A stretch of DNA of 64,000 bases from IMG/VR virus record IMGVR_UViG_3300005941_000003, positions 62,001-126,000 of that record; one strand, given 5' to 3'. Both the position numbers and the translations under genes were made by a program. The notes beneath the pieces are model-generated. The model had not been told where the DNA came from and made no database searches. It saw nothing but the letters and a program-made list of their open reading frames with translations. Position 1 is the stretch's first letter; each line of letters begins with the position of its first letter. Shown piece after piece: positions 53,949 to 55,015 of the stretch.

Positions 53949-54797
53949 ATGACTTCTAACCCATTAGGGAAATATTTCAGAAGACCTGTAATTTATATTT
54001 CATTACCTACGAATGGTATTTTCAATCCAGAAATTGATCAATCTATGATCAATGACATTGGCATTCTACCAATGACCGCACTAGATGAAATAAGTCTTCG
54101 TAACCCAGATGCACTACTAAACGGTGACGCAATGATTAGTCTGATACGTAGTTGCGTTCCGTCAATACCAGACCCAAAGAAACTTGCCAACATTGATATC
54201 GATGCTCTTTATCTTGCTATACGTTATGCAACAAGCGGTAAAGATATTGAGATTGAACATAAATGTAGCAAATGCGAAGAAACAAACAATTTCAGTGTTG
54301 ATATCAACTTTATCTTAAACAAGTTTCCGGATATACACGAAGCACCTGTAATCGAATATGACGATATAAAAATTCATGTTCGACCACCAACAATCGACAG
54401 TGTTACCAAATTGTCGTTGATTGAAATGGAGCAAAACCGTATTCTAAAAGATATAAAGACTATTATAGAAAGTGACACAGAAAACAAAGAAGAAGAATCC
54501 GCAAAACGTTTCTACAATAGCTATATGAAAATAGCACAACATAACATCGATATGATGTCTGACTGCATACTGTATGTTGAACTACCCGATGGACAAAAAA
54601 TTACAAATAGTGAACATCTACAGGAATTCGCCAACAATATGGAAGGTAAGCTAACTGCACAAGTTAATGCAGAAATTAAAAAGCTGACCAAGAAACCAGA
54701 AGATGCAACTCATATGGAAATAACATGCCCAAATTGCGGCAATGTTGAAAAGACGGTTCTCGAGGTGAACCCAGTAAATTTTTCCTCGGCTGGCTAA
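53949..54797 (+). CDS. gp26: Baseplate hub assembly chaperone (gp26-like)
   Basis: NPLGKYFRRP, PMTALDEI.L..PD.L.NG, two CxxC pairs, DIDALYLAIR; GGAG RBS before MTSNPL. Confidence 0.85.
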   Translation: MTSNPLGKYFRRPVIYISLPTNGIFNPEIDQSMINDIGILPMTALDEISLRNPDALLNGDAMISLIRSCVPSIPDPKKLANIDIDALYLAIRYATSGKDIEIEHKCSKCEETNNFSVDINFILNKFPDIHEAPVIEYDDIKIHVRPPTIDSVTKLSLIEMEQNRILKDIKTIIESDTENKEEESAKRFYNSYMKIAQHNIDMMSDCILYVELPDGQKITNSEHLQEFANNMEGKLTAQVNAEIKKLTKKPEDATHMEITCPNCGNVEKTVLEVNPVNFSSAG

Positions 54798-55015
54798 CTA
54801 ACGCCAGCTACCAGGATCTTGAACAAAGACAAGAAAATTTTAAAAAAGAACTTGACACGACTCATAAGAATCTGATAAAATTAACATGGTATATGAGAGG
54901 CGGTGTATCACTTACAGAGATATACGACATGCCTCTTAATCATATAAACTACATAAACGAACTAATACAAGACAACATTGAATTTAGTAAAAAAGTAAAA
55001 CAAGTTGTTTTCTAG
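54782..55015 (+). CDS. gp51: gp51-like frame lacking a proper start, probably reached by -1 frameshift from gp26
   Basis: 77 open codons (FLGWLTNASY...WYMRGGVSLTEIYDMP...QVVF*); the first ATG (54893) lies inside the conserved motif; missing from the ORF track. Confidence 0.7.
   Translation, partial: FLGWLTNASYQDLEQRQENFKKELDTTHKNLIKLTWYMRGGVSLTEIYDMPLNHINYINELIQDNIEFSKKVKQVVF

Follow-up and report, generated by a model that had tools for sequence, protein, structure and literature searches.

Does the gp26-like gene of this phage specify one protein, ending at its stop codon, or are there two, the second carrying a C-terminal extension read in another frame? The question is raised by a locus within the window, as we call the whole stretch of 64,000 nt of DNA that was analyzed. 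From the sequence alone, the first-pass annotation had claimed that gp26 is fused at this locus to a gp51-like C-terminal domain by programmed -1 frameshifting. Conservation of the locus supports this central claim: the gp26-like gene very probably yields both a short protein and a protein 77 residues longer via programmed -1 ribosomal frameshifting, although no protein-level, ribosome-profiling, or reporter data are available for any member of the family.

The gp26-like gene and the elements at its 3' end

The features of the locus are the following:

51320..53845, minus strand: divergent neighbor encoding an 841-aa Ala/Gly-rich protein, the presumed tape-measure/gp29 analogue
53855..53883, plus strand: σ70 consensus TTGACA-17-TATAAT upstream of the gp26-like gene (12/12 match; a consensus match only)
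53949..54797, plus strand: gp26-like baseplate-hub assembly gene, 0 frame, encoding the 282-aa short product
54762..54768, plus strand: SD-like GAGGTGA with 7 nt between it and the heptamer; stimulation by it is possible, though unproven
54776..54782, plus strand: slippery heptamer A_AAT_TTT (type X_XXY_YYZ) in the gp26 frame (codons GTA AAT TTT), the proposed -1 shift site
54782..55015, plus strand: -1-frame extension, 77 codons followed by TAG 55013-55015, the tail of the putative 355-aa long product
54783..54816, plus strand: stem-loop 3' of the heptamer, in which GCTGGC 54789-54794 pairs with GCCAGC 54803-54808
54852..54881, plus strand: internal σ70-like TTGACA-18-TAAAAT (11/12 match), inside the extension and just upstream of ATG 54893, of unknown role

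The product of ORF 53949-54797 matched the PF12322 (T4_baseplate) profile with an E-value of 1.3e-23 and 84.3 bits (cut-off of 24.5 bits) over profile positions 41-212 of 219, and phrog_150 with an E-value of 2.3e-27, which shows that this ORF is a genuine gp26-family gene. The short product ends in ..NPVNFSSAG and contains the CxxC pairs C106/C109 and C260/C263 (Cys4 motif). The gp26-like part and the extension were each modeled separately with AF2. For the gp26-like short product the model had a pLDDT of 87.9, and its best structural matches in BFVD were gp26/gp51-type hub proteins (from E=3.5e-23); the model of the extension was all helical, with a pLDDT of 91. Neither model had a match at E<1 in a Foldseek search of the PDB, and a profile search of PDB sequences with the gp26 and the extension alignments returned nothing meaningful. 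No match to the DNA of the locus was found in 50,697 phage records. An Rfam scan of 54600-55750 gave one sub-threshold chance match only, and a tRNA scan of the whole window detected no tRNA.

The gp26-like gene diverges from the gene encoding the 841-aa protein, with the portal/head module beyond, and endonuclease and ligase genes lie downstream. The order portal, structural protein of ~700-840 aa, and gp26 occurs also in Phosso and XaC1. By BLASTP the 841-aa neighbor was weakly similar (4e-5) to RaK2 ORF088, which is annotated as tape-measure-like; it had no Pfam or PHROG match, and BLASTP against T4 gp29 and against the Phosso neighbor showed no similarity.

At the 3' end of the gene, all the sequence elements that the first-pass annotation had listed were found at the coordinates it gave. 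AAATTTT motifs are common in the AT-rich DNA of the window, which has 20 of them versus 33 expected by chance, and the heptamer alone therefore carries no significance; the significance of the site comes from the features that occur together and from their conservation. The 0-frame stop, TAA 54795-54797, lies 12 nt past the heptamer and opens the 8-nt loop of a hairpin whose core stem is separated from the heptamer by a 6-nt spacer (54783-54788). Outer pairs can form between TCCT 54783-54786 and AGGA 54813-54816. Folding of the 40-nt segment gave exactly this structure, thus confirming the stem, its TCCT/AGGA extension, and the stop in the loop as they had been proposed, at -16.5 kcal/mol with z=-4.12 against dinucleotide shuffles (1 of 200 shuffles was as good).

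No stop interrupts the -1 frame between 54749 and TAG 55013-55015. Its first ATG, GTG, or TTG is ATG 54893, codon 38 of the extension, which falls inside a WYMRGG motif (WYMRGG..EIYDMP). A shift at the heptamer would thus join 278 gp26 residues to 77 further residues in a product of 355 aa. The 77 codons, the late start at 54893, and the product sizes of 282 and 355 aa in the earlier claim all held.

Conservation of the site and of the -1-frame peptide

To define conservation we used 2 sets of relatives: 59 non-redundant jumbo-type sites, consisting of the window, 54 IMG/VR loci, Atu_ph07, Phosso, Vibrio 2.275.O, and XaC1, and 63 non-redundant T4-like marine/cyanophage loci. An in-frame slippery heptamer, either T_TTT_TTC/A/T or A_AAT_TTT, closes the gp26 homologue (PF12322) in 59/59 jumbo-type and 63/63 T4-like marine sequences. 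It is located 0-36 nt before the gp26 stop in the jumbo-type sites and always 3 nt before it in the T4-like cyanophage and KVP40-like loci. Past the gp26 stop the -1 frame stays open for 58-92 codons, and the +1 frame closes after 1-29. The same layout was found in the cultured phages GAP32, 121Q, RaK2, PA5oct, XacN1, P-HM1, S-CAM1, and ACG-2014j and in the KVP40-like phage ValKK3. The first-pass annotation had named conservation of the heptamer and of the frame offset as a check on its claim, and this check was passed in every relative examined that has the single-gene layout. What it had named as a refutation, relatives with an independent gp51 start and no slippery site, is not what most relatives with this layout show.

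The nucleotides of the site are themselves under selection. The codon that precedes TTT TTC/A/T was NNT in 114/114 cases, encoding H, Y, S, N, D, or T, and at T_TTT_TTA sites L replaces F in the 0 frame, yet the -1 reading FFR is kept. The extension peptide was conserved in an alignment of 55 relatives, with the -1 reading retained from the heptamer on (FFRxxLL...WYMRGG..ER..) and ahead of any start codon, and codon-position differences matched coding in the -1 frame on both sides of Met 54893. Peptide conservation and codon-position differences together show that the extension is under purifying selection. The first ATG, GTG, or TTG of the relatives often lies 18-37 codons past the shift, and most have no usable start before the conserved part. 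The extension of the window had no significant match in Pfam, in the PHROG profiles, or by tblastn; when all 55 extensions were compared with PHROGs, 2 members matched, and only phrog_18291, a family of unknown function that includes 121Q-type small ORFs.

Folding downstream of the site was stronger than in in-gene controls in both sets of relatives (p=4e-10 and 2e-29). In the 11-sequence clade to which the window belongs, 95% of the cells of the hairpin alignment pair versus 3-55% in slid registers. The register of pairing is shifted in 3 clade members, there is a single compensatory pair (GC to AU or the reverse), and the shuffle control for the clade was not significant; it is possible that conservation of the hairpin in the clade stems in part from the conserved residues W-L..A-S. 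In the cyanophages the hairpin starts 4-6 nt past the site and shows compensatory variants. The position of the hairpin fits that of a stimulatory RNA structure, ~5-9 nt downstream of the site, and such a function is likely, with stimulation itself being inferred.

The first-pass annotation had also included the upstream SD-like element, which is present in the window; its role as a conserved stimulator is not supported beyond part of the clade. GGAG or GAGG occurs at the equivalent place in approximately 7 of the 11 clade sequences but is nearly absent from the remaining 48 jumbo-type sequences, and the element was not found in the wider family outside part of this clade. GAGGTGA moreover coincides with the codons for the conserved residues L-E-V.

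Inside the extension, the internal promoter-like match (10-11/12) is found at the same place in 10/10 clade relatives, and the Leu codon at this element is CTT wherever a relative has Leu. Together with the ATG (54852-54895), the element might allow additional, independent expression of the last 40 residues.

Relation to T4 gp26 and gp51 and to known frameshifting genes

In the literature on phage T4, gp51 is described as needed for assembly yet not present in the particle, and gp26 and gp51 are counted among the chaperones of hub assembly (PMC3004832). The 2 proteins are members of the family to which the window protein belongs, with PF12322 E-values of 8.8e-64 for T4 gp26, 3.9e-52 for T4 gp51, and 1.3e-23 for the window protein. 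T4 gp26 consists of PF12322 alone (residues 1-206 of 208), and T4 gp51 of PF12322 (1-201) followed by a 48-aa tail that matches the cyanophage extension. T4 gp51 is thus a gp26 paralogue with a tail added, and this tail is likely equivalent to the extension. The 2 T4 proteins show the same short/long relation as the 2 predicted products of the window gene, and the C-terminus of T4 gp26 (..EFFELL) falls where the FF shift site lies. In contrast to the window, the 2 forms are in T4 separate, divergently transcribed paralogues that are ~20% identical, and the window tail is only weakly like the T4 tail. We also considered whether T4 gene 26 ends with a frameshift and rejected this idea: its end has no heptamer and no -1 ORF, gene 25 follows directly, and the -1 frame is that of gene 25.

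The cyanophages provide the link between the extension and gp51. Sullivan et al. 2010 (PMC3037559) described 'gp51' proteins of cyanophages and marine vibriophages that lack the first ~200 residues, which was left unexplained there. The cyanophage 'gp51' ORF matched phrog_634 ('baseplate hub assembly catalyst') with an E-value of 7.5e-28 and T4 gp51 over residues 209-249. As in the window, the 'truncated gp51' of cyanophages and KVP40-like phages is a small -1-frame ORF after gp26, placed behind T_TTT_TTC/A and a hairpin. We propose that these proteins miss 200 residues because gp26 supplies them through the shift. The cyanophage tail belongs to a different subfamily from that of the window (FYQTNF..YSL..MPWER versus WYMRGG..EIYDMP), and it matches phrog_634 strongly whereas the window tail matches nothing. 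Comparison of the jumbo-tail profile with the cyanophage/T4-tail profile by hhalign placed both in homologous register, weakly so (P=0.005, probability 7%); the extension profile against T4 gp51 alone and T4 gp26 alone was not significant, with nothing in the gp51 tail. The positional equivalence of the extension and the cyanophage/T4 tail is complete, with the same domain end, shift site, and length. The label 'gp51-like' thus held only through this chain of position and weak profile similarity, without a direct HMM match.

Long forms encoded in a single frame also exist. A profile search with the extension found 755 clusters, and among the best 150 matches there were 20 natural fusions of 319-351 aa with the extension in frame at the C-terminus. 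Their contigs carry a short PF12322 paralogue directly upstream, in a tandem short-plus-long arrangement. These in-frame relatives have other junction sequences, without the heptamer.

A close counterpart is the frameshift reported for the phage lambda G/GT tail assembly chaperones (Levin et al. 1993; Xu, Hendrix & Duda 2004), with equivalents in P2 (E/E+E') and Mu. Common to lambda and the window are a -1 shift at an X_XXY_YYZ heptamer, placed close to where a gene for a tail-morphogenesis helper ends, a short and a C-terminally extended protein with a common N-terminal part in a ratio fixed by the shift (for the window, as predicted here), a site conserved over very divergent phages, and a position next to the tape-measure gene, here a presumed one. 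The gp26-like gene is, however, not located between the tube and tape-measure genes, and the window protein, at 282 aa, is far larger and contains a Cys4 motif. We detected no similarity to G/GT-type chaperones by profile search of the PDB, by Foldseek against the PDB (E<1), or among BFVD names; the coverage of such chaperones in these libraries was not verified. The first-pass annotation had called the pair a G/GT equivalent, and this is not supported as stated: there is a functional analogy, but no detectable fold or sequence relation, and the gene position is wrong. Equivalence to lambda G/GT thus rests on analogy, and binding to the tape-measure or tube protein is untested. E. coli dnaX (tau/gamma; A_AAA_AAG) offers a likeness in the arrangement of the site, since in the window, too, the heptamer is preceded by an SD-like element and followed, 6 nt further on, by a GC-rich hairpin. 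In contrast, the dnaX shift shortens the protein and that of the window would lengthen it, the heptamers differ, and the SD-like element of the window is not conserved outside part of the clade and lies on conserved codons.

Alternative explanations and the proposed mechanism

One objection is that there are 2 separate genes and that the extension is translated alone, with ribosomes initiating or re-initiating past the gp26 stop or on a transcript from an internal promoter. For the window, this would mean translation from ATG 54893 of a 40-aa peptide. In favor of this explanation, most of the 12 GenBank/RefSeq records that we inspected call a distinct small ORF, Phosso has an ATG that overlaps the stop, and in the clade of the window TTGACA-18-TAAAAT precedes the ATG of WYMRGG and seems to be conserved at the nucleotide level. 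However, a start ahead of the conserved part is missing from most sequences, conservation of the peptide begins at the heptamer itself and includes the overlap with gp26, ATG 54893 has no SD sequence, and its Met is missing in many family members and in all cyanophages. Separate genes would moreover leave unexplained the invariant heptamer, the NNT that precedes it, and the fixed -1 offset in 122/122 sequences, as well as the natural in-frame fusions. We consider this explanation very unlikely.

Slippage in homopolymer runs is known to fuse frames in bacteria and phages, and a shift could also occur during transcription if RNA polymerase added a base in the T-run, so that some mRNAs would encode an in-frame fusion. 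Most relatives do have a run of 6 or 7 T at the site. Against this, the window and its nearest clade have only 5 T (AAATTTTTCC) and yet keep X_XXY_YYZ in frame, the site is always in the register for tandem tRNA re-pairing, which polymerase slippage does not require, and the structured element, enriched and covarying, is placed at the 4-6 nt spacing of ribosomal frameshifting. Transcriptional slippage is therefore highly improbable, and we infer that the shift takes place on the ribosome and not during transcription. An assembly error that splits one in-frame 355-aa gene, or a downstream ORF that is a dead remnant, can be practically ruled out. The natural in-frame long forms of some relatives do show that a one-ORF state is biologically possible, but these relatives differ at the junction, have no heptamer, and carry a second, short paralogue. 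The gp26 and extension DNA was identical in contigs from 4 metagenomes, one of which may be the source of the window itself, and an assembly error is therefore unlikely; the same split is present in 122 non-redundant sequences as well as in cultured phages with finished genomes. Decay of the downstream ORF is contradicted by the purifying selection on the extension.

Altogether, programmed -1 frameshifting is well supported because the heptamer is universal, the -1 frame is open, the peptide is conserved, the preceding codon is NNT, downstream structure is enriched, and long-form paralogues exist. According to the frameshift model, most ribosomes would terminate at TAA 54795 and produce the 282-aa protein. 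A fraction would slip back one base on A_AAT_TTT 54776-54782, probably aided by the stem-loop 6 nt downstream, and would read the -1 frame to TAG 55013, producing gp26 residues 1-278 followed by the 77-residue helical tail. The expected junction peptide is ..PVNF-FLGWLTNASYQDLEQR in the window and ..NPVSFF-QR in PA5oct. Modeled on T4, where gp26 would correspond to the short and gp51 to the long form, we infer that both forms may be needed in a set ratio for assembly of the hub or for tail initiation. We further infer that a single frameshifting gene is the widespread arrangement and is probably ancestral, and that duplication would have replaced it in T4 and a few other lineages.

A bolder reading can be put forward only with reservation, as we judge it slightly more apt to fail than to hold. 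It takes the gp26/gp51 pair as the long-sought G/GT-chaperone counterpart of T4-type and jumbo myoviruses, with a frameshifting gene ancestral to the T4-like superfamily, both forms working jointly on the tape-measure/hub complex in proportions that the shift determines, and T4 genes 26 and 51 and the tandem paralogues arising from duplication. Of its components, the recoding event and the relation in architecture between gp26 and gp51 already have good support, and the chaperone role and the direction of evolution are conjectural. If this reading is true, the 'catalytic' gp51 of T4 would be the low-abundance long form of a chaperone pair.

The joined CDS was annotated in 0/12 of the GenBank/RefSeq records inspected, in which the extension is given as a truncated 'gp51', as a small hypothetical ORF, or not at all, and we found no description of a gp26/gp51 frameshift in the full-text literature searched, from which subscription-only papers were excluded. 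If the frameshift is real, it would constitute a recoding event in hundreds of sequenced phages, seen in Rak2-like and Atu_ph07-like jumbo phages, PA5oct, KVP40-like vibriophages, and the abundant marine T4-like cyanophages. It offers an explanation for the puzzle of the 'truncated' gp51 of cyanophages and vibriophages noted in 2010, and links 2 T4 hub-assembly genes about which little is understood, 26 and 51, as encoding the short and the long form of a single protein. Nature would moreover provide here a clean case in which frameshifting and gene duplication each stand in for the other, and what gp26 and gp51 do during hub assembly could be tested directly in cultured phages.

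A gp26-family gene with an overlapping -1 frame

The ORF at 53949-54797 is a true gp26-family gene, matching PF12322 T4_baseplate (E=1.3e-23) and phrog_150 'baseplate hub' (E=2.3e-27). The first-pass annotation had claimed that a programmed -1 frameshift fuses its product to a gp51-like domain, and every sequence element it named was confirmed at its position:

54762-54768, +, SD-like GAGGTGA, read from sequence
54776-54782, +, slippery heptamer A AAT TTT, in the frame of ORF 53949-54797 (..GTA AAT TTT TCC TCG GCT GGC TAA)
54789-54808, +, stem GCTGGC/GCCAGC after a 6-nt spacer, the TAA stop opening its 8-nt loop
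54749 to 55013-55015, +, open -1 frame ending in TAG, without ATG, GTG or TTG before 54893 (ORF listing)

The stem can be lengthened by the outer pairs TCCT/AGGA, and the 40 nt 3' of the heptamer were predicted to fold as described (-16.5 kcal/mol, z-score -4.12 versus dinucleotide shuffles). Taken alone the heptamer is uninformative, because AAATTTT occurs 20 times in the AT-rich window versus 33 expected. The -1 peptide of the window gave no family match in Pfam or phrog searches, and no match by tblastn against phage records.

At the DNA level the window had no match among 50,697 phage records. By tblastn, the gp26-like protein showed at most 34% identity to its counterparts in jumbo myoviruses (Atu_ph07, Phosso, XaC1, the Rak2/GAP32/121Q group, PA5oct and XacN1), T4-like cyanophages being remoter matches, and Phosso and XaC1 show synteny with the window's gene layout:

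major head protein, protease and portal, -, in the neighbourhood (gene order)
841-aa Ala/Gly-rich protein gene, -, between the portal module and the gp26-like gene
gp26-like gene, +, adjoining the 841-aa protein gene
PDDEXK endonuclease, ligase, gp46/47-like genes and late sigma factor, in that order after the gp26-like gene

The divergent intergenic region upstream of the gp26-like gene contains a perfect TTGACA-17-TATAAT (12/12; 53855-53883, +), a surprise for what is presumed to be a late structural gene of a phage that carries a gp55-like late sigma factor (61489-62367). Downstream of the -1 frame, about 685 nt (55016-55699) contain no ORF of 60 aa or more, tRNA or Rfam match and carry short direct repeats, namely two copies of a 23-nt unit (55024 and 55060) and two of CTAATATCTATCC (55040 and 55110). 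In GAP32, 121Q and Phosso, too, 0.8-1 kb between the gp26 extension and the endonuclease gene carries no annotation. ARAGORN found zero tRNA genes across the whole 64-kb window.

Conservation of the site and selection on its nucleotides

In the first four annotated relatives, the small ORF after gp26 sits in the -1 frame (4/4), and gp26 ends in ..DPSxFFx with an in-frame T_TTT_TTC from which the -1 reading is FFRMRLL... We then fetched 80 IMG/VR loci by family profile; the 76 analysed, pooled with those four relatives and the window, gave 59 non-redundant jumbo-type sites. In all 76 loci the stop is closely preceded by an in-frame T_TTT_TTC and/or A_AAT_TTT. In this set the -1 frame stays open for 63-92 codons beyond the stop, the +1 frame for only 1-29, and the -1 peptide is conserved starting at the heptamer (alignment A2). 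GAP32, 121Q, RaK2 and PA5oct have T_TTT_TTC and XacN1 has T_TTT_TTT, each followed by a similar -1 ORF, and cyanophage P-HM1 shows the identical arrangement, its downstream ORF being annotated 'gp51'. A second fetch yielded 63 non-redundant marine T4-like loci, in all of which T_TTT_TTC or T_TTT_TTA precedes the stop by exactly 3 nt and a -1 ORF extends 58-64 codons past it; the KVP40-like vibriophage ValKK3 is arranged likewise. Conservation of heptamer and frame offset, which the first-pass annotation had proposed as a check, thus held in jumbo-type, cultured and marine T4-like sequences.

The nucleotides of the site, and not the proteins alone, are under selection. The codon before TTT TT[C/A/T] in the 0 frame is NNT in 114/114 cases, though the encoded residue is variously H, Y, S, N, D or T, and the two Phe codons are invariably TTT TTC, never another synonymous combination. 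When the last base of the heptamer is A, the 0-frame residue becomes Leu and the -1 reading is still FFR. The sub-clade of the window lacks one T (AAATTTTTCC instead of AAATTTTTTC), and an in-frame X_XXY_YYZ is still present as A_AAT_TTT.

We consider it very likely, in the absence of protein-level data, that a programmed -1 ribosomal frameshift operates here. Ribosomes would slip -1 on A_AAT_TTT in the canonical manner, probably aided by the hairpin 6 nt downstream, and products of 282 aa and 355 aa would result.

Alternative explanations and stimulatory elements

Artefact or decay as the origin of the split ORFs is all but excluded. DNA identical to the window over gp26 and the extension was found in contigs of four metagenomes (3300027757, 3300005941, 3300027416 and 3300027188), one of which is possibly the window's own source; this counts against an assembly error, which would have refuted the first-pass reading, and the split is very probably genuine. 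Independent translation of the small ORF, as a replacement for frameshifting, is very unlikely. The first potential -1-frame start codon often lies 18-37 codons past the shift, inside or beyond conserved sequence, and pairwise differences at codon positions 1/2/3 in the window's clade (0.36/0.23/0.41 before the internal Met, 0.30/0.15/0.54 after it) fit -1-frame coding on both sides of that Met. Such translation remains possible as an additional route because a conserved promoter-like TTGACA-18-TAAAAT precedes ATG 54893. Transcriptional slippage on the T-run is equally improbable: the window site has only five T, the reading-frame register is strict, and the hairpin spacing also speaks against it.

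The promoter-like element itself (54852-54881, +; near-consensus sigma70 type with TG, 11/12) is located within the -1 extension, just upstream of the WYMRGG Met. Matches of 10-11/12 occur at the same place in 10/10 clade relatives, and its Leu codon is CTT in every relative with Leu there, despite the AT-rich genome. Inferred from sequence alone, it might promote expression of the downstream region or of a 40-aa C-terminal peptide.

Returning to ribosomal frameshifting, the hairpin is likely to be real in the window's clade, its stimulatory function being inferred. The stem is paired in 95% of cells across the 11 sequences versus 3-55% for slid registers, and one pair switches between GC and AU. 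Covariation alone is no proof, because the shuffle control for pairing in this 11-sequence clade was not significant and three members pair in a register displaced by 4 nt. In cyanophages a stem follows the heptamer at a distance of 4-6 nt, its variants being compensatory (GCCCTC/GAGGGC, GGGCTCTC/GAGAGCCC and GGACTATC/GATAGTCC), and in both sets predicted folding of the 42 nt beyond the site is more stable than that of in-gene controls (-8.15 versus -4.72 kcal/mol, p=4e-10; -11.0 versus -4.5, p=2e-29). The proposed dnaX-like SD stimulator fared less well: the element, present in the window, occurs in about 7 of the 11 clade members and almost nowhere else, it overlaps conserved L-E-V codons, and a stimulatory role is unproven.

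Long and short forms and their relation to T4 gp26 and gp51

A search of 1.84 billion representative proteins with an HMM built from the jumbo-type extension retrieved 755 clusters at E<=1e-3. Among the best 150, about 129 were short ORFs (44-102 aa), their starts arbitrary, and 20 were longer proteins (319-351 aa) that carry the extension in frame at their extreme C-terminus and whose junctions (e.g. ..LDLDFCNLF-RAKLVSS..) lack the heptamer. In the contigs of two of these long proteins, the gene directly upstream encodes a short PF12322 paralogue (329 or 294 aa) and retains a relic T_TTT_TTC/A, after which its -1 frame ends within one or two codons. These tandem pairs, which replace the frameshift, are at 411-2389 and 51-2051 of comparison loci L182 and L179, respectively; their short copy has lost its Cys motifs.

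T4 gp51 (249 aa) consists of PF12322 (residues 1-201, 3.9e-52) and a tail like the cyanophage extension, and gp26 (208 aa) of PF12322 only (1-206, 8.8e-64); gp51 is thus built like the predicted long product, and gp26 like the short one. The two are recognisable paralogues (BLASTP 2e-6). T4 gp26 ends in ..EFFELL without a heptamer, directly followed by gene 25, whose first base is also the last of the gene 26 stop codon; gene 25 is in the -1 frame, but a slippery site is lacking. Genes 26 and 51 are divergently transcribed (3803-5229 of the T4 locus, L005). Given the in-frame long proteins with a short upstream paralogue, the T4 pair and the frameshift genes, three interchangeable arrangements exist: a single gene with a -1 shift, a short and a long gene in tandem, and T4's divergent genes. 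Both the short and the trans-frame long form are likely functional proteins, on strong indirect evidence without protein-level data.

The cyanophage extension matches phrog_634 'baseplate hub assembly catalyst' (7.5e-28), the C-terminal end of phrog_150, and residues 209-249 of T4 gp51 (BLASTP 2e-7, single comparison). For the window, the link rests on a position fully equivalent to the gp51 tail, a shared junction pattern (FFRxxLLxxxPxEI in the jumbo type, ..VFKLLVNPDEI in T4) and a profile-profile alignment that is weak but falls in the homologous register (P=0.005, probability 7%). When T4 gp51 alone was the hhalign target, the tail went undetected. The label 'gp51-like' therefore holds through the cyanophage/T4 chain, the direct match being weak.

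AF2 gave pLDDT values of 87.9 for the gp26 domain and 91.0 for the extension, predicted as two long helices (28 and 21 residues) and two short ones. Neither model had PDB neighbours with E<1, and BFVD matches of the gp26 model were gp26/gp51-type proteins only. Structure comparison found no relation to lambda-type chaperones. The proposed equivalence to lambda G/GT works as an analogy (both concern tail morphogenesis, with a pair of short and extended products and a gene adjoining a tape-measure-like gene) but fails as a family relationship, and gene position differs.

The mechanism is of a well-known kind; this instance is apparently undescribed. We found no description of recoding at gp26 in the open-access literature searched (subscription-only literature and recoding databases were outside our scope), and a joined CDS was absent from all 12 GenBank/RefSeq records inspected. 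The conserved extension ORF is wholly unannotated in the deposited genomes of cyanophages S-CAM1 and ACG-2014j (1201-1398 in loci L176 and L177, respectively); in other cyanophage genomes it is named 'gp51' and begun at an internal ATG, and annotation across GenBank is inconsistent.

In T4, gp26 and gp51 are listed as hub assembly chaperones, gp51 being required yet absent from the particle (PMC3004832); by inference from T4, the shift would set a low long:short ratio. Sullivan et al. 2010 reported, without explanation, that gp51 of cyanophages and marine vibriophages has only ~20% of the length of its T4 counterpart, the first ~200 residues missing (PMC3037559). Frameshifting would supply those residues from gp26. 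It would be broad, spanning Rak2-like, Atu_ph07-like, PA5oct, KVP40-like and cyanophage lineages, and it would reinterpret the T4 gene pair 26/51.
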